Source of the DNA: Prasinococcaceae sp. CCMP 1430
Lineage: Eukaryota > Plantae > Prasinodermophyta
Length of the DNA: 64,000 nt
Direction of reading: 5' to 3'
Assembly: GCA_013416795.1 (NCBI GenBank)
Contig: RQSC01000025.1
Location: 69,832-133,831, forward strand
Shown piece after piece: positions 19,937 through 62,838 of the stretch (position 1 is the first letter of the stretch; each line of letters begins with the position of its first letter). The notes beneath the pieces were generated by a model that saw only the letters and a list, made by a program, of their open reading frames with translations, did not search any database and was not told where the DNA came from. The translations under genes and the position numbers were made by a program.

Positions 19937-22065
19937 TCACTGAGCGCAGGCGTGCGAGGGCGCCGCGGTGGCGCCCGCGCCGCCGGCGTGCCGGCCCTCG
20001 CCATCGGCCATCTGGGACCGCGCGAGTGCCACCAGCTCTGCTGCCGCGCCGCCCTCCACGTAGGGCATGCCGCCGCTCGTCGCAGCCGCGAATTCGCGCA
20101 CGCTCGACACCGCGAGGGGCATGCCGACCAGCCGGTCGTTGAGGACGACCGTGGCGACGTAGTCGCCGGGGCGCACCTGCACGCGCTCAGGCCCGTTCGC
20201 CGCGCCCATCGCGCTGCCACCGCGCAAAGCCCCCAGGGAGGGCGCCACCGCCAGCTCCTTGGGTATGCGGATGCCCCGGTTGGTGTTAGAGCGCGCCCAC
20301 AGCTCGCCCTCCTTGTTGCCGTCCCCCTCGACGAGAGCGAGGTGCACGCGGCCGACCTCCCTCGCGCGTTGGAGCTCCTCGCCGCGGCGGTACGCAGCAA
20401 TGATCTCCTCGAGCCGGCGCTGTTTGTCCGAGGCGGGAACGTCGTCCTCGTACTTCCTCGCCGCGTGTGTTTTGTCCCTGCGGCTGTAGGCGAACAGGAA
20501 GGCCGACGCGTACCCCGTGCGCTCGATGAGATCCACCGTGAGGGCGTGGTCGTCCTCGGTCTCGCCACAGAAGCCTGCGATGAAGTCCGAGGAGATCTCG
20601 AGCCCGGGCAAGGCAGCGCGCGCGCGGACCACCAGGGAATCGTACGCCTCTCTCGTGTACCCGCGCCGCATGCGCTCCAGCATGCGGCTCGAGCCGCTCT
20701 GCGCGGGCAGGTGCAGCATGCGGCCCACGTTCGGGTGGCGGGCTACCACCTCGAGGACGTCGTCACCAAAGTCCTTGGGGTGAGGACTGGTTGCGCGGAA
20801 GGTGATCTCCGGGTGCGCACCCGCCGCCGCGTCCAGCAACCGCGCGAAGGTGAAGCCACCACGCTGCGGCTTGTACACGGATGTGAAGCCGTCCGCGTAG
20901 GCATCAAAGCCCTCAGCGCCGCCCTTCGAGCGGCCGCCGCTCTCGCCGCCCAGGTAGCAGTAGCTGTTGACGTTCTGGCCGAGGAGCGTGACCTCTTTGA
21001 CGCCCTGCCGAGCGAGAGCGTCGATTTCGCCGAGGATGCTCTCTGGATCGCGGGAGCGCTCGCGACCGCGCACGTATGGCACGATGCAGAACGAGCACAT
21101 GTTGTTGCACCCTGCAGCCGCACCGCCAGCGAAGAGAGCGCGAAGCGCGCTGGTCAGCATGGGCGCGTGCGCGCCTCGCACGCGCGGCCAGGGCAGCGCC
21201 ACGCACCGCGCGTGATGGAGACGAAGGCGCCAACGTCGCCAGCGCGGCGCACGGGCGTCACGTCTGCGTATGTTTCCTCGAGCGATAGCTGGACGTTCAT
21301 GAGGCCCGCACCGGCCAGGCCCGTGCGGCCAGGGGCCGCCAGCGCCGCACCGGCCGCACCCACCAGCCGCGGAAGGTCCCGGTAGGCGTCGGGGCCCGCC
21401 ACCACATCCACTAGCCGGTCGCTCTCCAGCAGCTGGCGCTTGAGGCGCTCCGCCATGCAGCCCAGGACGCCAACGACGGGAGACGCGGGCACACCCTTGC
21501 GCTTTGTGCGAACCTTGAGGTTCTTGAAGTAGTTGAGACGCGACAGCACCTTGTCCTCCGCCTTCTCGCGAATCGCGCACGTGTTGAGCAGCACGACGTC
21601 GGCGGTCGTCGGCCCGTCTGCTGCGACCATGCCGGCGTCCGCCAGGACGGAGAGCACCACTTCGCTGTCGGCTTTGTTCATCTGACAACCATAGGTCTCC
21701 ACCCACAGCGAGCGGCGCTCCAGCCATCGCTGCGGGAGTTCCGTCGGCGAGAGCGGTGCGCCTGCGCCAAATCCCGTGCCCGCCCCCGTGCCCGCGCCGC
21801 CCGCGCCGCCCGCGCGCCCGTCGCCGCCAACGAAGTCGGCGAGCGTCTTGCCGTCCTTGGGCAGCTGCCGCGAGCGCGCGCCGGCGCCAGCGGTGGAAAA
21901 GCTCGCGGCCGCCGCCGCCCTCACCCTAGCAATTGCGGCGGCCATAGACCTCTCAGCGGTGGCAGCGCCCACCGCTGCGCCGCCCGCCGCGCCGCCTGCT
22001 GCTCCAGCCGCTGCGCGCAGCCGCCTCGCCGCCGAGCATGCGCTGAGCGCAGCTCTGCGCCGCAT
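19937..22065 (-). CDS. CDK5RAP1: tRNA methylthiotransferase MiaB/CDK5RAP1 (radical SAM), 2 exons
   Basis: UPF0004 domain ([28 protein letters not shown]). Intron 21206-21112 joins ITRG|CNNMCSFC to form CxxxCxxC. Also [37 protein letters not shown] and a TRAM-like C-terminus. Mitochondrial-type presequence. Confidence 0.92.
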
Positions 22066-39390: not shown

Positions 39391-42300
39391 ATGCCGTGGC
39401 GGCGGCGACGCGGCGCGGGTAGCGACGCGGCTCGGGGAGGGAGGGCGACAGGCACGACGCTGGCGCGCTGTGCGGTCGCTGCCGCAGCCGTGGCGGCGGC
39501 CGAGCGTGCGTTGGCCGCTGCTGCAGACAAAGCACCCGCTGCCTCGCATCGGCATGATAAGGCGGCGCCCGACGATGCGGCGGCGCAAGCGATTTTTTTC
39601 CCCCTCTCCGTGAACGCGTCGGAGTTGACCACGGGCATCGGCAGCGAGGAGTCTGAGGAACACGCCAATCTCGCGGCGAATATCACGCTCTCCGCACCGC
39701 TGGTCACCGCAGTAATCGACGCGCCCGCTGCGACCTCGCCCCTGGACTCGCCTGGCGACTTTGAGCTCGTGACACGTGCACCGCAGGCTTCGCAGCCGTC
39801 GGCGGCCTTCCATCCAGCGTCTGGCACGGTGGAAGAGATGGCGGCGCGCAGGACGATCGTGGTGTTCCAGTCGGACATCGTCAGCGATGAGGACCTAGGG
39901 AGCTTATGCACCGGTCGACTTCCAGACACATGGGAAGACAGAGTGCTGGAAGAGCCACCTGCCGAGGGCGTCTCGAGGCAATGCAGCGAGGCGCTGCCCG
40001 AGATCGTGCGGCGAAAGCCGGAGCGGGTGGCGTGCGACGAGGCGGCGTGCTGCAGACGCACCTTCGACCCACTGCTGCTGCTGGGTGTGACGATCGAGGG
40101 ACCTGCGCCAGCGGTGGATGCGTGGCTTTTCTGCAGCGGGGAGTACGTACTCTTTACGGAACCGGATGCCGTGGTATTAGGGCCGTCGCTCGGACGCCCA
40201 CCAATGAGCGACCCAAGCGGGGGTGCGGACGGGGGCGGCAATGTCAGCAGCGGGAGCGGGCCTGACAGCACTGATGCGAATGATGGTCCGACAGTTGCGA
40301 ATACGGAAGAGCCCGAGGCCGAGCCCGCGCCCGAGCCCGAGCTCGAGCCCGAGCCCGAGCCCGCGCCTGAGCCCGAGTCGACCCTCATGTTTTCTCCTCC
40401 GTCGCCCTCATTTGCACCCACACCTACACCAGCGGGGTCACCCATGCTCGTGCCCGAGCCCGAGCCCGTCTCCGTCCCCGAGCCCGAGCCCGAGCCTGTC
40501 TCCATCCCCGAGCCCGAGCCCATCCCCGCCGCTTTGCCCGAGCCTCCGCCCGTGCCCGTCCCCGAGGCCCCGCCCGCGCCCTTGACAGAGCCTCCGCCAG
40601 CGCCCGGGCACGCGGTCGAGCAAAAGGCCGAGGAGGAGCCCGAGATCCAAGACAAAGACGCCGCAACCGATGACGCGGGAGCTCCAGACGAGAATGCACT
40701 GAGCGAGGACACACACTTGGGACGCCGAGCGCTGCTGACGCACACCCATGACTCCCCCAGCCTCGAGGCACAGGCCGGCGATGCCGTCGACAACCTGCTC
40801 GCGTCGCCCACCTGCCAGGACCCGTCCACGACCTCGTGGGCGCTGGATAGGATGGACCAGCGGCGGCGGCCTGACCTGCAAGCTCCCGCGAGGTATCGTG
40901 GGCTCGGCTGCGAGAGCGAGAGCGCGGCACCGAGCGGCGGCGGCGGCGGACCCGAGCTGCAGAACGCGACTGGCTTGGGGGTGTTCATCTATGTCATCGA
41001 CACCGGCGTGGACGCGCTTCATGCGGAGTTCCGCACGCAAGACGACAGGACGCGCACGGTCAAGGGCTACGACTACGTCGACGACATCGCCTCGGTGGTG
41101 GATTACGACGGGCACGGCACGGCGGTGGCTGCACTTGCCGCGGGCTCGACCACAGGCACGGCGCCGCGGGCAACGATCGTGCCGCTGCGCGCGCTGTCGA
41201 GGGGCACTGGGCTGAGTTCGCACCTCATATTGGCGCTCCAAATGGTCGCGACAGAGCATCACTTTCGGCCAGAGAATCCTTCGCTGGTGGTCATGTCGTT
41301 CACGACCCCAGCGAGCAACTCGCTCGCTCTGGCCAAAGCGATTGAGCGCGTCGTGGCGCTTGGGGTGACCATCGTCGCGGCGGCGGGGCAGACAATCTTT
41401 GGCCCGGGAAGCGATGCGTGCGATGTCACACCCGGTGGGCTGGATTCCGTGATCACAGTGAGCGGCTCGACGCCAGGCGATGAGTTCATGAACCACGCGA
41501 ATATGGGCCCCTGCGTCGACTTGTTTGCGCCGGCGGTGGACGTGCGAACGGCGTGCACGCGAAACTCAGCCTGCGAGGAGGTGCCGCCGGACGTGCCGGG
41601 CCTGAGCTCAGCCGGGTCGAGCGGCGTGGACCTCTCGTCGCAGGTGTTTCGCACGGGGCATTCGATCCCGTCCGGAGCAAGTGCGAACATGACCACGGGA
41701 TATGCCTCCGTGACAGGCACGTCGTTCGCCACGCCGCTCGTGGCGGGCGTCGTCGCCAGAGTGCTTTCCCGCTATCCCTTCGCACAACCGGCGGAGATCA
41801 AGGCGTTCCTGAAGCTGCACGCGACGCGCGGGGCCATCCGAAGCGCTCCTCCCCAGATGGGCGCAGGTGACAGGAACGTCACCACGAACCTGCTCGTCCA
41901 TACCTTGCTCGAGAGCGAGAAGCTCGCGGCCATCCCGTCGCTGGTGTCCCAGTGGCGCTGCTTGACGCATCCGGAGTGTCACGCCACCCTGTACGGCGAG
42001 GACGAAGCGGCAGACGCGACAGGCGACGACTCGCAGGGCGCCGCGCAAGGCCAAGGGGGTGAGAGCGAGGCCGCCGCGGGCCTCGACGCGAGCGCCATGA
42101 CGCCCACGAAGGACGAGAAGCCGGAGATGGACTTAATTGGCACCGCGTGGTCCGAAGAGATATCGCCCAGTGCGTTGCCCACGTTCGCATCGACGCCGCT
42201 CGGCACGCGTGTGGCGGTCGAGGGCGGCCTGGTCAGGGACGGAAAGGTGCAGGGCGTCTACGAGCTCGTCGACGGCCAGGAGGAGGGCGCGGGCTTCCGG

Positions 42301-43971
42301 CTCTTTCGCTCGAACCGGGCGGACCAGCGCAGGTATCGGCTGTATTTGTACGCCGCATTCGTGGCGTCCATGCCGGCGTGTTCGCCTGAATCCCTACAGG
42401 TGTGCCTCGTGATCGACCATGACACCGACCCCACCAACGGCGTCATCGCCGTCAACCCGGACGCGATACCCTCCCCCACGTCGAAGAGCAAGGCCGACGG
42501 GAGTCGTATGGCTCTCAGCGATGGCGACTCGCTGGGCGCGATCGCCGCGGCGGCCGCGTCCATCGATGTGGGTAACTCGCGCGCCGTGTGTCCGTTGTCG
42601 TGGTACAGCCTGAGCGCATCGAAGGACGTCGTCGTGCCCGGCGCCCCACCCCGATGGGTGCAAGACCCCATCTTCATCACGCACGCAAACGCGCCGTGCG
42701 ACACGGCGCTGACGGTGCGTGCACTCGGCAACGATGGCAACGCGTCGACGGGCACGGCGGAGGTGGATGCGCTCCACGGCGTGGCGCTCAACTCGCTGTA
42801 CCACCCGGGCGCCGCACAGCAGCACGGCGGCGGTGCCGGGAGTCACGACGGCGTCATGACGGGGGAAGGCAATGCGAGCGAGACGACCGCCGGAGGGCAG
42901 CTCGCGTTCACTGCCAGTTCCGAGCTGTCCGCGTTTCGGGAGAGCGCAGCAGCCTCGAACGACGAGCGCGCGACCTACGTGCTGCGATACGTCAGCGGAA
43001 GCGATGCCGGCTCGGGCATCGGCGAGGTCGGCGAAGAGTGCCAGGCGGCCGGGGGTTGCTTGACCATCCTCTCCGCTGCCGAGAGTGAAGAGGGCGAACC
43101 CGCCGGGCATCACAAGCTGGGCACGGCGGCCCCCAGCGTGACCCTCCTCGCGTACTTGCCAGCGGCAGAGGACAGCGATGGTGCACGGAGCGCTCTGCGG
43201 GCAGCGTCGGCGTCAGTCTTTGGGGCTGAGTGGAAGGTCTTGACGGGATCCCCTCAACAAGGGCGCCCTCAGTCAATCGCGCACGCCGGACAGAACGGCA
43301 CCGACCTCGACGGGTCGGCGGCAGGGCACGGCGGGGAGGTAGAAGACTCTCACGACGCCGGACCGCACTATTCCCCTCGGCGCCTCGAGACGAAATGCTG
43401 GCCGGACAGGAGGACGCCGTGCACCGCCCTGCGCGTGGAGGGCTCGGGCGTGTTCGGGGGTCGCTTCAATGGACTGTACGTGCTGCACGGCTTCTTTAGC
43501 GGCGGTGGGGACGGCGGCGGCGGCGGCCTCATGGCCAATGGCTCCCTTCCGAAGGGCAACAAGACCGAGACCAGCTCGGCGTCCACGATGCTCGTCGTGC
43601 GCAGCACGCCCGATATGCTGCCGGACGACTGCGCCGCAAACGACTGCGCGCACCGCCATGGGCCGGTGTTCAAAGCGATCAATCAGACCACGGGCGATCC
43701 TCGGGCGTACCTGTACGCCTCGGGCCGCTGGTTTGGTCGCTGGGTGATAGACGAGGACGCCGACGAGTCCAATGGCGTGTGGGGGGTGGGCTACGGCACC
43801 ACGCCGAACTCGACTATCGCGGACAGGCGCTATGCATTCAGCGCGGCGCTTGGGGCGGTCTTCGCGCGCGACAACGCCAAGCCGACGACCTGGGCGATGC
43901 GCACCCAAGAGCGCGAGCACGCGGGCGAGCCGTGGGAGCTCGAGCAGCTCGAGGTGCGCTGCGAGGGGTGA
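39391..43971 (+). CDS. Large subtilisin-like S8A serine protease with Pro/Glu repeat linker and long unknown C-terminal extension
   Basis: Catalytic triad motifs YVIDTGV, GHGTAVA and GTSFATPLVAGV; also GPCVDLFAP. Signal-like N-terminus; (PE)n repeats at ~40313-40380 and ~40452-40570; 1526 aa, intronless. Confidence 0.85.
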   Translation: MPWRRRRGAGSDAARGGRATGTTLARCAVAAAAVAAAERALAAAADKAPAASHRHDKAAPDDAAAQAIFFPLSVNASELTTGIGSEESEEHANLAANITLSAPLVTAVIDAPAATSPLDSPGDFELVTRAPQASQPSAAFHPASGTVEEMAARRTIVVFQSDIVSDEDLGSLCTGRLPDTWEDRVLEEPPAEGVSRQCSEALPEIVRRKPERVACDEAACCRRTFDPLLLLGVTIEGPAPAVDAWLFCSGEYVLFTEPDAVVLGPSLGRPPMSDPSGGADGGGNVSSGSGPDSTDANDGPTVANTEEPEAEPAPEPELEPEPEPAPEPESTLMFSPPSPSFAPTPTPAGSPMLVPEPEPVSVPEPEPEPVSIPEPEPIPAALPEPPPVPVPEAPPAPLTEPPPAPGHAVEQKAEEEPEIQDKDAATDDAGAPDENALSEDTHLGRRALLTHTHDSPSLEAQAGDAVDNLLASPTCQDPSTTSWALDRMDQRRRPDLQAPARYRGLGCESESAAPSGGGGGPELQNATGLGVFIYVIDTGVDALHAEFRTQDDRTRTVKGYDYVDDIASVVDYDGHGTAVAALAAGSTTGTAPRATIVPLRALSRGTGLSSHLILALQMVATEHHFRPENPSLVVMSFTTPASNSLALAKAIERVVALGVTIVAAAGQTIFGPGSDACDVTPGGLDSVITVSGSTPGDEFMNHANMGPCVDLFAPAVDVRTACTRNSACEEVPPDVPGLSSAGSSGVDLSSQVFRTGHSIPSGASANMTTGYASVTGTSFATPLVAGVVARVLSRYPFAQPAEIKAFLKLHATRGAIRSAPPQMGAGDRNVTTNLLVHTLLESEKLAAIPSLVSQWRCLTHPECHATLYGEDEAADATGDDSQGAAQGQGGESEAAAGLDASAMTPTKDEKPEMDLIGTAWSEEISPSALPTFASTPLGTRVAVEGGLVRDGKVQGVYELVDGQEEGAGFRLFRSNRADQRRYRLYLYAAFVASMPACSPESLQVCLVIDHDTDPTNGVIAVNPDAIPSPTSKSKADGSRMALSDGDSLGAIAAAAASIDVGNSRAVCPLSWYSLSASKDVVVPGAPPRWVQDPIFITHANAPCDTALTVRALGNDGNASTGTAEVDALHGVALNSLYHPGAAQQHGGGAGSHDGVMTGEGNASETTAGGQLAFTASSELSAFRESAAASNDERATYVLRYVSGSDAGSGIGEVGEECQAAGGCLTILSAAESEEGEPAGHHKLGTAAPSVTLLAYLPAAEDSDGARSALRAASASVFGAEWKVLTGSPQQGRPQSIAHAGQNGTDLDGSAAGHGGEVEDSHDAGPHYSPRRLETKCWPDRRTPCTALRVEGSGVFGGRFNGLYVLHGFFSGGGDGGGGGLMANGSLPKGNKTETSSASTMLVVRSTPDMLPDDCAANDCAHRHGPVFKAINQTTGDPRAYLYASGRWFGRWVIDEDADESNGVWGVGYGTTPNSTIADRRYAFSAALGAVFARDNAKPTTWAMRTQEREHAGEPWELEQLEVRCEG

Positions 43972-58563: not shown

Positions 58564-59746
58564 TCAGGGCATCTGGCTCTTGCTGGCGCGCAGGCAGGAG
58601 GCCGACGGCGAGAGCAGCAGCTTCTCCACGCTCTCGGGCGTGCTGGACGCGTGCAGCAGGAAGACGCCGACGAAGACGGTGGTGAAGCCGCTGAGCTCGC
58701 TCAGCTTCTGCACGCCGCCCAGCCCGCCCAGCTCGTCGTACATGATGGCCTCGGCGAGGACGGTCAGCGTGGTGAAGAGCACGTAGTATATGGGGCTCAC
58801 CACGGCCGTGTTGAACAGGTCGAGCGCGCGATTGAGGTAGTTCATTTGCTGCGCGCGCGCGCCGGCGCGCCGGCGCGCGTCAGCGCGAGCGACGCGGCGG
58901 GGATGGGGGGGATGGGGGCGTGGGGAGGCGCGCGCGGCGGCGCACCGTGACGACGCAGCACGCGACCACGAGCGCGAAGAACCAGGTCTCCGGGCGGCCC
59001 ATCTGGTCGTCGCCGCGCGCGGTGAGCTTGAGCGCGATGCCGAGCGCCTTGCAGCTCATCACGCTCAGCGAGCCCATCAGCGAGCAGATGGACACGTACA
59101 CCAGGATCTGCGAGCGCCCGTGCCGCGGCGCGACGGCGCACGCCAGCGCCGCCGCCGCGCACGCGGCGCACGCGGCGTACGCCGCGAACGCGGGCGCCGT
59201 CGCCATCGCGAAGAGCTCCCGCACCGACTCGACGCGCGGCTCCTCGGGCGCGTGCGTGACGATCACGGCCGACCCCGCGACGCACAGCACGCACCCCGCC
59301 GCGCCCAGCACGTGCAGCCGCTCGCCGAGCAGCGCGCCGGCCAGCGCGGCGGTCACGAGGATCGACAGGGCGCCCAGGGGGGTGACGAGCATCGCCGGCG
59401 CGAACGCGTAGGCGACGAAGTTGCACGCCTCGCCCGCGGCCATGAGGAGGAGGCCCGACCACCACAGCGGCGAGCGCAGGTAGGAGTAGCCGCCCGACGC
59501 GGCGCGCAGGGCGTTTGCGTGGGTGCTCGCCGCCGCGCGCAGCCCCTTCTTCTTCACGATGAACGACGCGCCGATCATGAGGGCGCTGGCGAGGGCGAGG
59601 AGGGTGCCGATGGTGCGGTCGTTGTCGTCGGAGAGGTAGGAGTAGCTTTGTTGTTGTTGGGCGTGTGTGTGGGCGTGGGTGTGTGTGGGGGTGGGGGGGG
59701 TTGTCGCTGCTGCTGTTGTGGTGGCTGTGTGTGGGTGGGGGCGCAT
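58564..59746 (-). CDS. NIPA: NIPA-family magnesium transporter, at least 2 exons; start uncertain
   Basis: IGASFIVKKKGL, YLRSPLWWSGL, GEACNFVAYAFAPAMLVTPLGALSI, SICSLMGSLSVMSCKALGIALKLT. Intron 58945-58849 gives VVT|QMNYLNRALDLFNTAVVSPIYYV. Confidence 0.9.
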
Positions 59747-60323
59747 GGTCGTCGTCGCGAGTGCGGCGTTGTGGTGGGTGGGTTGTGGTGTGTGTGTGTG
59801 CGAGCTCGATGGGCTGACGCATGCGCGTGCAGCGCGACCAGCGCGAGCGCGAGCGCTCTCCCCGCGCCCCCGCGATGCCAGGGGGGGCGTTCGGTCTGCG
59901 CTGCCGGTTGTGCATCCGAGCGAGCAGCCCCGCGGCGTGATTCCTCCATCGGATCCTGTCTCCGCGGACGCGCGCCGCGCCGCGCCTCGCGCGCGACTGG
60001 CCGCCCCTGGATCCGATTCAGCCTCCGCGCACGCTGGCCTGCATGCCGGTGTCGGACTCGGGCACCGGCGTGGTCGTGCGCGCCGGATTTCGTTTCGGGG
60101 CTATTTCGCACCCGTCCTGCAGTGAAAATGTACATAATTTTGAACGTAATATGCCCTCTAAACTGATCAAACATAATCCCGTGGATCACCGGGCGCGCGC
60201 GAAGGCTCCTCGTGGTGGATGGGTTGATTATCGGAGGGCATGGAAAGCGCCTAACGCCCGGGAACGCGCGTACGTGTATGTGCTCGTCCACGAAGTTGTG
60301 GAGGTGTCCTTGGCCACCGGCCA

Positions 60324-60810
60324 TGCCTGAAAGCGTTGTTCATGTGAAGGTGAGTCGGCTGCTGCTTCCGCTCAACGCCCACCGCCCTGCTCGCCTCCTC
60401 CTCGATGCTGTCCTCGGACCTGCAATCGTTGGACATGCGGTCGTCGCACGTGCATGCGAAGAGGGCGGCGCCCTTGCTGTGGGTACAGCATGGCACCCGG
60501 CCCCTCCTGGCGCTCTCGCCGCCCAGCGGCTCTTGGAACTGACGCATGTGGCCAATGATGCCACCATCGACGAGGTCGTGATGGTGCGCTCTGCGTTCTT
60601 GTGCACGCGGTCACCCCATCCCGCCGCGCGCGTTTTCATTCGCGCCGAGGGCGACGGAGGCGACTGACGGAGAGGCACCCAGCAGTACGGGATCTACATG
60701 GCATGCGAGGTATGATATACTAACGGGAGAGTCAGGCTCGTGATATGAGAATTATCGAGTCTGGGCAGATATCGCTTGGGCGCATGGCGCCCCGCGCGCC
60801 GCCCCGGTAG
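60324..60810 (+). other. Possible small multi-exon gene of unknown function
   Basis: Ordered splice-like signals: donor GTGAGT ~60351, donor GTGCGC ~60584, branch CTGAC ~60664 with CAG 60682/60685, donor GTATGA 60710 with TACTAAC 60718 and AG 60735. No recognisable product. Confidence 0.3.
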
Positions 60811-60866
60811 GCCCCGGGTAGGATCCGCGCATTCGAGCAAAAAAAAAAAAAGAACGCGTGGGCAGC

Positions 60867-60875
60867 AAAAAAAAA
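60867..60875 (-). terminator. RNA polymerase III oligo-T terminator for tRNA-Val
   Basis: T9 run 15 nt downstream of the discriminator base on the minus strand; a second T run lies at ~60838-60851. Confidence 0.7.
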
Positions 60876-60889
60876 CAGCAACCGAACGC

Positions 60890-61061
60890 TACAAAGAGGG
60901 AGGTTCGAACTCCCGACCTTTCGCCGGCCGGCATTCGCATGCCGGCCACTCGCGTGTGAGGCGAGCGTCATGAATCGTCACGAAAACTGTGCGCGCACAG
61001 ATTTGGTTCCAACTAGATTGAACGCATTACGTCTCCCCGAGACGTAAAATTCCATCCTTGC
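60890..61061 (-). tRNA. trnV-CAC: tRNA-Val(CAC) interrupted by three non-canonical hairpin (BHB-like) introns
   Basis: Exons 61061-61052, 61017-61009, 60973-60949 and 60919-60890 join to GCAAGGA TG GTCT AGTTGGTCA TGAC G CTCGC CTCACAC GCGAG AGGTC GGGAG TTCGAAC CTCCC TCTTTGT A (74 nt). Acceptor, D, anticodon and T arms all form; the B box is intact and a T9 terminator follows at 60875-60867. Confidence 0.88.
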
Positions 61062-61408
61062 TCGGTTATGGTGGGGGTCGCTGATGCGACAGGTCCCGAA
61101 ACCGGGGTATATAAACAGACAAGACGGTCACCAGACAGAGACACATCTCCATGCAATTCGATGGGCCGTGTCGCGCGCAAAAGCGCACGCACCCCGGTAT
61201 CACCCCAAAATCAGTCCCCCCTCCCCGGCCGCGCAGCAGCGACGCCCATCAAACCCCCACGAAACGACCCAGGAATCCGCGCGGCTCCACCTCTGCGCCC
61301 CGCCAGACGGCCGGCATACCACTCCCGAATCGACGGCGCGCATCGACCACCGCAGCAGCGGGCGGCGCAGCGCCTGGCGAGATGCTTGCGGTTGAAAGAA
61401 ACGCAGCG

Positions 61409-62646
61409 ATGGCGCTGGCATGGCTGACGAGCTCCCGCTCCTCCTCCGCAGCTGACATGCCTGCCTCTCCCCGCCGCCCTTCCCCCTCCCCCACTCGCCG
61501 TGCGCTCGATCGCCGTGGGCCGCCACGCGCTGGCGGGGCTTCGCCGCCGCCTCGGGCACCCCCACCTCCTCGTCGCAGCAGCAGCAGCAGCAGCAGGAGG
61601 AGGAGGAGCAGCAGCAGCGGCAAGAAGGGCACCACACACACCAACCCTCCACACCATCACCACAGAAAACAACGCTCCCGGCGACGGCGCACCCACACAC
61701 CCCGACGACGCCACCACCACCACCAAAAACAACAACAACGAAAGGCTCGGTGCTGCGCGCCATCCACCTGGCGCGCAGCCGCTCGGCGCGCCGCCTCCCC
61801 GAGCGCCTCGCCCTGCACGCCTCCCTCAGCGACCGCCTCCTCGAGGACCCGTCGTCCCGCCCCGCGATGACCAGCCACTCTCAGAAGCGCACCGGCCTGA
61901 TCGCGTACAAGTGCGGCATGACCGCCGAGTGGACCGAGCACGGCAACCGCATCGCGCTGACCATCCTGCACGTCGACAACTGCCAGGTCACGCAGGTCAA
62001 GTCCCCCTCCACGGACGGCTACAGCGCCCTCCAGCTCGCCGCGGGCTCCAAGCGGCCCAAGCGCGTCGCGGCCCCCCAGCGCGGCCACTTCGCCGCGGCG
62101 GGCGTGGACTGCAAGCGCACGGTGGGCGAGTTCCGCGTCACGGAGGACGCGCTGCTGCCCGTCGGCACGCGGCTGAACGCCACCCACTTCCGGCCGGGCC
62201 AGCTGGTGGACGTGGTGGGCACCAGCAAGGGCAAGGGCTTCGCCGGCGTGATGAAGCGCCACAACTTCAAGGGGCAGCCGGCGTCGCACGGCACGGGCAT
62301 GGTGCACCGCCGGGGCGGCTCCATCAGCTCGCTGGGGCTCGGGCGCGTGTGGCCAGGCAAGAAGATGGCGGGCCACATGGGCAACGCCAGGACGACCGTG
62401 CAGTCGCAGCGCGTGCACAAGATCGACCTCGCGCGCAACCTCATCTTCGTCGCCGGCGCCGTGCCCGGCCCGGTCGGCGGCGCGGTGTTCGTGCGCGACG
62501 CGCTGCGCGACCTGAGCCAGGAGGCGCTCGACGTGCCCTTCCCCGCCTTCGTCGAGGGGGTGGACGAGGTGCCGCACCTCGACGAGGCGCTCGGCGAGGC
62601 CAGGGCGCCCGCTGGGCGCAACCCGTACCACGTGTACCTCAAGTGA
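61409..62646 (+). CDS. RPL3: Ribosomal protein uL3, mitochondrial type; 5' structure uncertain
   Basis: KRTGLIAYKCGMT, QLVDVVGTSKGKGFAGVMKRHNF, GRVWPGKKMAGHMG, GAVPGP. The core frame is secure from ~61745. The N-terminus needs an intron (candidate 61629-61744) or a frameshift. Confidence 0.88.
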
Positions 62647-62691
62647 CAACTCATGTACGCATGTACAACTTCGAGGGGCAGCCGAGGGCTA

Positions 62692-62838
62692 GCGCTGCGC
62701 GACCTGAGCCAGGGGGCGCTCGACGTGCCCTTCCCCGCCTTCGTCGAGGGGGTGGACGAGGTGCCGCACCTCGACGAGGCGCTCGGCGAGGCCAGGGCGC
62801 CCGCCGGGCGCAACCCGTACCACGTGTACCTCAAGTGA
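62692..62838 (+). repeat. 147-bp direct duplication of the uL3 3' coding end (copy of 62500-62646)
   Basis: Only two differences seen (GAG>GGG, GCT>GCC); both copies end in AAGTGA; 45-bp spacer. Confidence 0.92.

Follow-up and report, generated by a model that had tools for sequence, protein, structure and literature searches.

We find that the 64-kb window (the whole stretch of DNA analysed here) contains what is probably a functional, collinear nuclear gene for the cytosolic tRNA-Val(CAC) of a GC-rich green-lineage alga, in which three short inserts divide the tRNA sequence into four exons (Table 1). When the four exons are joined they form a 74-nt cloverleaf, which ARAGORN calls as tRNA-Val(CAC). 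The coordinates, the lengths of exons and inserts and the 74-nt product match exactly those of an initial annotation of this DNA, which had also placed no intron at the canonical 37/38 site; indeed, all three inserts lie elsewhere in the tRNA.

Table 1. The tRNA-Val(CAC) locus and its surroundings, listed in the direction of the tRNA gene (positions are those of the window)
Feature	Position	Strand	Description
uL3 gene	61750-62646	plus	ribosomal protein uL3, alphaproteobacterial-type, presumably mitochondrial; neighbour gene
TTTATATA	61108-61115	minus	-54 to -47; candidate upstream Pol III promoter element
Whole tRNA-Val(CAC) gene	60890-61061	minus	172 nt, from G1 (61061) to discriminator A73 (60890)
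Exon 1, 10 nt	61052-61061	minus	tRNA positions 1-10: acceptor 5' strand, U8, G9, G10; sole 5' solution of the parse search
Insert 1, 34 nt	61018-61051	minus	position 10/11, D-stem; 9-bp hairpin; 3' tail GUUC pairable with exon nucleotides 5-8
Exon 2, 9 nt	61009-61017	minus	tRNA positions 11-19: 5' strand of the D-stem, plus A14, G18 and G19 of the D-loop
Insert 2, 35 nt	60974-61008	minus	position 19/20, D-loop; imperfect hairpin, 10 pairs and 2 mismatches
Exon 3, 25 nt	60949-60973	minus	tRNA positions 20-43: D-loop end, D-stem 3' strand, entire anticodon arm, anticodon CAC
Insert 3, 29 nt	60920-60948	minus	position 43/44; G+C-rich hairpin, 9-10 bp, GCGA loop
Exon 4, 30 nt	60890-60919	minus	tRNA positions 44-73: variable loop, T-arm (B box intact), 3' strand of the acceptor stem, A73
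T9 run	60867-60875	minus	begins 15 nt past A73; candidate Pol III terminator
T13 run	60839-60851	minus	second candidate terminator
NIPA gene	58880-59746	minus	NIPA-type magnesium transporter; neighbour gene

Results

A candidate tRNA-Val(CAC) gene with three inserts

The spliced 74-mer begins with an acceptor stem of 7 bp (five Watson-Crick and two G-U pairs), carries U8 and, in the D-arm, A14, G18, G19 and A21, and continues with a 5-bp anticodon stem, an anticodon loop of the sequence CUCACAC that includes U33, and a 5-nt variable loop. The T-arm has the stem GGGAG/CUCCC and the loop UUCGAAC, and the discriminator is A73. The molecule follows the cloverleaf rules throughout, and all of the conserved residues looked for (U8, A14, G18, G19, A21, U33, G53, T54, T55, C56, A58 and C61) are in place. 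The identity of valine tRNAs is set by A35 and C36 of the anticodon together with the discriminator A73; here the anticodon CAC supplies A35 and C36, and residue 73 is A. Judged by its sequence, the locus therefore has the look of a genuine tRNA-Val(CAC) gene, collinear and interrupted by three inserts. The acceptor stem starts with a G1-U72 wobble and has just two G-C pairs; so weak an acceptor stem, with G1-U72, is unusual for a cytosolic tRNA. In seven confident open reading frames (ORFs) of the window GTG makes up 58% of valine codons, and the anticodon CAC thus serves the commonest valine codon here.

Standard scans miss the gene in its unspliced form, as the initial annotation had expected. 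ARAGORN does not call it with the intron option either on or off, and it is absent from the Rfam results at the gathering threshold (29 bits for RF00005). In E-value mode RF00005 gives a sub-threshold match of 14.3 bits at 60890-60990; this score is that of the unspliced sequence only, for which a value below 29 bits is expected because the gene is interrupted. The corresponding alignment has the anticodon and T arms correct, treats insert 3 as an insertion and has a false 5' end. No further sub-threshold tRNA matches were returned by Rfam in E-value mode from the whole 64-kb window. ARAGORN also called an intron-containing tRNA-Trp(CCA) at 21161-21253 on the minus strand. This candidate sits within a long radical-SAM ORF (19940-21727, minus strand) and shows no T-arm consensus; most likely, coding DNA rich in G+C has given rise to a false call here.

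We also looked for relatives of the gene in the JGI metagenome collection. Neither a degenerate pattern (anticodon arm, a gap of 15-45 nt and T-arm) nor exon 4 alone as the query had any match in that collection, which yielded no ortholog, paralog or spliced transcript. Contigs of related organisms could be reached through the neighbouring genes, with 96% (NIPA) and 76% (uL3) protein identity, and through uL3 we found Tara Oceans contigs with ~99% DNA identity to the window. All of these neighbour-gene contigs are 1.0-1.4 kb long and end before the tRNA gene.

Tests against a chance cloverleaf

A canonical T-arm, defined as a 5-bp stem closed by G53-C61 with a loop TTCRANY, occurs once in the 64-kb window when both strands are counted, and this single occurrence is at the tRNA-Val locus; 0.1 were expected from shuffled sequences. 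For the 5' part of the gene we performed an exhaustive parse of the 260 nt that precede the 3' strand of the D-stem, applying plain cloverleaf rules; inserts of 10-60 nt were allowed anywhere, up to a maximum of two. In the real upstream sequence, just one solution emerged for exon 1 (positions 1-10) and for the point where exon 2 starts. Among random genomic upstream segments, any solution at all was found in 1 of 1500.

Acceptance by ARAGORN was rejected as a test of significance. When random genomic 19-mers were placed before the real 3' 55 nt, the program called a full-length tRNA-Val for 0.58% of the 300,000 combinations. Since acceptance by ARAGORN is weak evidence, we used the rule-based exhaustive parse and its genomic null instead.

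The cloverleaf might in principle have arisen by chance, from three freely chosen deletions beside a fortuitous T-arm-like hairpin, and both the rate at which ARAGORN accepts random 5' parts and the false intron-containing tRNA-Trp that it called in a coding ORF of the window speak for such a possibility. The T-arm, parse and flanking-signal tests together, however, make a chance cloverleaf very unlikely. Four lines of evidence argue against it, and they are largely independent of each other: the low expected number of T-arms per window, the parse null, the register of the short helices at the three insert junctions (joint chance ~0.002-0.005 with genomic 4-mers; see below) and the T-runs that adjoin the gene. 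We give this explanation next to no probability, and continue with the reading of the locus as a functional tRNA gene.

Relaxed bulge-helix-bulge motifs at the junctions

A motif of the bulge-helix-bulge (BHB) type consists of two 3-nt bulges around a 4-bp helix (H); its relaxed forms, hBH and HBh', are without one closed bulge. The second nucleotide of a bulge is the one behind which each cut is placed, in eukaryotic pre-tRNAs with their anticodon-intron pair as well as in the BHB structures of archaea. It follows that H pairs the exon nucleotides -5 to -2 relative to the 5' cut with the insert nucleotides -5 to -2 relative to the 3' cut. At the boundaries given in Table 1, this helix has all four pairs in insert 1 (two of them G-U) and three of four in both insert 2 and insert 3. 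In all three inserts the expected position of H is a local maximum, being the best within two sliding positions. The inserts also have a common stagger, the 3' tail past the hairpin exceeding the 5' tail by 5 nt, and in each of them the helix plus offsets sum to 8. Folded locally in the BHB register, inserts 1, 2 and 3 have energies of -9.6, -6.7 and -21.3 kcal/mol, and in stability these folds match or surpass the range given for spliced motifs of Cyanidioschyzon merolae (-11.2 to +1.15 kcal/mol; PMC3728597).

The outer parts of the motifs are incomplete. None of the three inserts has any pairs in the outer exon-exon helix h beside the 3' bulge, so that several of the '3-nt bulges' are open on one side, and the helix h' directly adjoins the bulge in insert 2 only. 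In insert 1 a 3x3 internal loop lies between hairpin and bulge, and the local MFE structure consists of a 5-bp helix (5-9/38-42); in insert 3, H ends with a G-G mismatch beside the 5' bulge. Not one of the inserts has the strict hBHBh' form, and by its pairing potential the motif at the junctions is a relaxed, HBh'-type BHB.

The hairpins themselves differ in how far they stand out from background. Those of insert 1 (-10.8 kcal/mol, z -3.5 against shuffles) and insert 3 (-19.9 kcal/mol, z -3.7) exceed shuffled sequences in stability by far, while that of insert 2 (z -0.2) is no more stable than shuffled sequences. In the MFE fold of the precursor, none of the three BHB motifs forms; instead, the acceptor, anticodon and T arms are present and the hairpins protrude. 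Forcing the BHB fold costs +6.7, +4.9 and +6.2 kcal/mol for inserts 1, 2 and 3, respectively, and 20.9 kcal/mol for all three together. For insert 1, H takes three nucleotides of the acceptor stem and hence competes with that stem; for insert 3, it takes the 3' strand of the anticodon stem and competes with it in the same way. A naive BHB scan over all cut pairs in the region placed insert 3 near the top and inserts 1 and 2 in the top 6-11%. A simple rule that combines the maximal hairpin with the BHB offsets predicts the boundaries of insert 2 exactly and those of inserts 1 and 3 with a deviation of one nucleotide on each side.

The arms of the hairpins and the pair counts of H (four of four with wobble, three of four and three of four) had been described correctly in the initial annotation. 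Its statement that the hairpins sit in 'exact BHB register' can be retained for the central helix, which is in register at all three junctions, but was too strong otherwise, since the outer helix is absent, the motifs are not part of the MFE fold and the maximal-hairpin rule is exact for insert 2 only.

A different reading is that the inserts are removed without BHB recognition, by another nuclease or ligase route that reads the hairpins or the cloverleaf core and for which the H helices are incidental. An MFE structure with acceptor, anticodon and T arms, protruding hairpins and no BHB fits that scheme, as do the missing outer helix and the one-nucleotide deviations from the maximal-hairpin rule at both sides of inserts 1 and 3. 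We know, however, of no such alternative pathway for tRNA, and all three inserts keep the constant 5-nt stagger and the constant sum of 8, the stagger being just what BHB geometry demands. Moreover, relaxed HBh' motifs, and even motifs with 'no H', are spliced in C. merolae. Removal by a non-BHB route therefore appears quite unlikely to us, and recognition of relaxed BHB motifs is the reading we prefer.

A second alternative concerns insert 3, whose very stable hairpin has a GNRA-type loop and emerges at the position of long variable arms. Conceivably, only the D-arm inserts 1 and 2 are spliced, and insert 3 is kept as an oversized variable-region arm of a class II-like tRNA-Val. Rfam aligns insert 3 as a plain variable-region insertion, and a form in which this insert is kept passes ARAGORN only with the insert read as an intron. 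Valine tRNAs, on the other hand, belong to class I. Class II tRNAs (Leu, Ser and Sec) have an extra arm of ~10-24 nt between positions 44 and 48, whereas here a valine tRNA would carry 29 nt beyond its normal 5-nt variable loop, more than is found in known variable arms; and H of insert 3 is in register with three of four pairs. Retention of insert 3 thus seems highly improbable, and we take all three inserts to be introns in what follows.

The exact ends of insert 2 deserve separate mention. According to the initial annotation, the cuts given by the BHB geometry are the same as those that the cloverleaf needs. This is so for inserts 1 and 3, whose boundaries the cloverleaf fixes, but not for insert 2, which has ten equivalent parses, distinguished solely by the D-loop's variable part. 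The parse in which exon 2 ends with G19 and exon 3 starts with U20 is the one that unites three of four H pairs with an adjacent h'. A rival parse, with the 5' cut shifted by one nucleotide and the 3' cut by two (54|55 and 90|91 in place of 53|54 and 88|89), has four of four H pairs and two outer pairs and no h' in register; it would yield a 73-nt tRNA with a shorter D-loop.

Transcription signals and neighbouring genes

Insert 1 splits the A box, and the B box is intact. The initial annotation had noted the split A box together with an upstream element at ~50 nt, and we recover both, the element being TTTATATA at 61115-61108. This is one of 30 A/T-only runs of at least 8 nt in the 64 kb, and the chance of finding one within 60 nt of a given point is ~0.03; the G+C content of the window is 69.3%. 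TTTATATA lies farther upstream than the -30 usual for a TATA-like element. By analogy with C. merolae (PMC3978253), we infer that it acts as a promoter element. Five T-runs of at least 8 nt are found on the minus strand of the 64 kb, and two of these five are within 40 nt 3' of the gene (Table 1).

The same T-runs bear on the arrangement of the exons. Circular permutation, with the tRNA's 3' half upstream of its 5' half, was considered and ruled out: the exons are collinear and the T-runs come directly past the acceptor 3' strand, and a gene that is collinear and ends directly at T-runs is not permuted.

A separate hairpin of 28 nt (11 pairs and one mismatch) is present on the minus strand at 61130-61157, 68-95 nt upstream of the tRNA and just past TTTATATA. 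As to the inserts themselves, a search of the window for further copies, as would be left by a dispersed repeat, found none.

The flanking signals are also relevant to the question of whether the gene is still alive. If three hairpin insertions had disabled it, another gene would supply tRNA-Val(CAC), or another isoacceptor would read GUG. The weak and energetically sub-optimal BHB motifs, the wobble at the first acceptor pair (G1-U72) and the split A box are all compatible with such a loss of function. A dead gene, however, would hardly be expected to have four undamaged exons that give a full cloverleaf, to retain both the T-runs and the TATA-like run at its flanks, and to keep the H helix in register at three junctions, in a genome where GTG is the main valine codon. 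We consider a dead gene unlikely, and a functional gene with three introns remains our preferred explanation.

Two divergently transcribed genes, which code for a NIPA-type magnesium transporter and for uL3, flank the 2-kb spacer in which the tRNA gene is located. Among named proteins, those most similar to the NIPA protein come from Chara braunii and land plants (55-61% identity). These matches, along with the eukaryotic character of the neighbouring genes, support a nuclear context in the green lineage, and the initial annotation's assignment of the locus to the nucleus of a green-lineage host thus finds support in them. Together with the G+C content of the window, which is close to the 69.8% published for Prasinoderma coloniale, the green-plant affinity of the NIPA protein makes this species the probable host. 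Third-position G+C content (GC3) is 0.94-0.99 in the real genes and 0.5-0.76 in ORFs of the spacer, including those that overlap the tRNA; across 58880-62646, GC3 offers an easy and powerful way of recognising coding DNA of this genome. With such values the ORFs overlapping the tRNA are unlikely to have been annotated as genes, and the idea of reaching further contigs through them was given up for this reason.

Several further observations were made on the genes of the window and their relatives. The coding region of uL3 is ~99.5% identical between the window and the four Tara Oceans contigs (L001-L004). Right after the uL3 stop codon the window has ~190 nt of extra sequence (62647-62837, plus strand), in which the final ~150 nt of the coding sequence of uL3 occur a second time. 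This stretch is present in the window and in Tara contig L003 and absent from L001, L002 and L004, so that the 3' tandem duplication of uL3 seems, from these sequences, to be polymorphic in natural populations. Upstream of uL3 (61575-61730, plus strand), runs of CAG/GAG and CCA/CAC triplets differ from the Tara Oceans contigs by indels of 3 nt and 9 nt. Elsewhere in the window, a 1526-aa subtilase (Peptidase_S8) ORF at 39391-43971 on the plus strand recurs without a single residue change on a contig of 4.8 kb from JGI sample 3300016765. That contig looks like a full-length transcript, which suggests that the gene is intronless and that the same species is represented in this data set.

Proposed maturation of the precursor

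We propose that the gene would be transcribed by Pol III through the intact B box. With the A box split by insert 1, the upstream TATA-like element probably aids the polymerase, and transcription would stop at the T9 or the T13 run. In the precursor, each insert would fold into its own hairpin, and the four exon nucleotides just before each 5' cut would pair with the four insert nucleotides just before the 3' cut, placing both cut sites two nucleotides beyond a short H helix in a relaxed HBh'-type motif. The tRNA splicing endonuclease, working without its usual mature-domain ruler, would cut six bonds, and tRNA ligase would join the four exons, the cut-and-join reaction taking place three times; the window carries no gene for either enzyme. 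End trimming and CCA addition would then yield a tRNA of 74 nt (before CCA) that is predicted to read GUG.

An ordered maturation pathway, as suggested in the initial annotation, is not implied by these motifs. They are local and mutually independent: they share no nucleotides, none gains from the removal of another insert, and hence no fixed order follows. The energy rule derived from C. merolae (PMC3728597) would put insert 3 first, whereas motifs of the anticodon arm are said to go last. Because the rule and this observation conflict, the comparison gives no firm prediction of the order.

Discussion

Introns of eukaryotic tRNA genes are generally taught to occur only at 37/38, where the endonuclease finds its cut sites by measuring from the mature domain of the tRNA. 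Documented exceptions to the 37/38 rule come from the red algae C. merolae and Chondrus crispus (PMC3728597; PlantRNA 2.0). With a gene that has three inserts and none at the canonical site, in a green lineage that branched off early, the exception would reach across the Archaeplastida; such a gene would also be informative on the evolution of the eukaryotic endonuclease from its archaeal counterpart. It is quite possible, and we suggest it tentatively, that Prasinodermophyta, the third green phylum, process most of their nuclear tRNAs by position-independent BHB splicing of the archaeal or red-algal style, possibly including the sole tRNA for the commonest valine codon, split three times and without a canonical intron. 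If this is true, a broad-specificity endonuclease would either have been present already when red and green algae shared an ancestor or have arisen repeatedly, and the 'ruler' mechanism would not be universal in eukaryotic tRNA splicing. There is also a practical side: because such genes escape standard annotation, it would make the tRNA sets, the codon-anticodon analyses and the estimates of completeness of this genome wrong.

The literature that we searched, including the genome paper of Prasinoderma coloniale, gave no description of the nuclear tRNA genes of Prasinoderma. A 2026 review of the tRNA repertoires of photosynthetic organisms speaks only of 'rare exceptions' in unicellular algae and leaves Prasinoderma unmentioned, and a passage of one other review mentions 'green algae' with multiple-intron tRNAs in passing.

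Archaea are one of the groups in which tRNA genes are interrupted in unusual places. Sugahara et al. (2008) and Marck and Grosjean (2003), as cited in later work, describe, for Thermoproteales and other Crenarchaeota, tRNA genes with two or three non-canonical introns of the BHB or relaxed-BHB type and endonucleases of broad specificity. The presence of several BHB-type introns at non-canonical positions is the feature shared with Thermoproteales. The crenarchaeal genes have archaeal promoters and are served by (alpha-beta)2 or epsilon2 enzymes with specific loops, whereas the gene described here is eukaryotic and, by its flanking signals, a predicted Pol III gene. For green algae, the literature that we searched reports circularly permuted tRNA genes, in Ostreococcus, Micromonas and Auxenochlorella (Maruyama et al., 2010). 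Like these genes of prasinophytes and Auxenochlorella, ours is green-algal, cryptic and missed by standard scans, and its maturation is likewise predicted to depend on BHB motifs.

In Chondrus crispus, a red alga, nuclear tRNA genes have introns in the D-loop (20/21) or the T-loop (58/59) whose splicing was validated by RT-PCR (PlantRNA 2.0), and tRNAscan-SE marks these genes with ectopic introns as pseudogenes (PlantRNA 2.0). The likeness consists in an ectopic D-loop intron in an algal nuclear tRNA gene. The introns of Chondrus, however, are at fixed positions and number at most two per gene, in contrast to the three inserts at 10/11, 19/20 and 43/44 found here.

A close counterpart is C. 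merolae, in which ectopic BHB introns, one to three per nuclear tRNA gene, were first shown. Of its nuclear tRNA genes, 27 are interrupted, by 42 introns in total, which fall in the D-stem, D-loop, variable arm, T-stem and T-loop; three of the genes have three introns each; splicing was verified by RT-PCR and northern blot (2013, PMC3728597). These genes also have a TATA-like sequence within ~50 bp upstream and a T-stretch downstream (PMC3978253). The tRNA-Val(CAC) gene resembles them in being nuclear and collinear, with no more than three short introns in the D-stem, D-loop or variable region, at least one of them outside 37/38, and in having a disrupted A box, an upstream TATA-like run and a downstream T-stretch (PMC3978253). 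It differs in several respects. The junction motifs of C. merolae range from strict to relaxed (hBH, HBh', no H), whereas all three are relaxed here; the three-intron tRNA-Ile(UAU) gene of C. merolae keeps one intron at 37/38, and there is none at that site in the present gene; and the host belongs to the green lineage, with splicing predicted here and demonstrated there. By this comparison, the architecture is the same as that of the C. merolae genes and the mechanism is probably the same as well; what is new is the lineage, the lack of any insert at the canonical site and the presence of relaxed motifs only.
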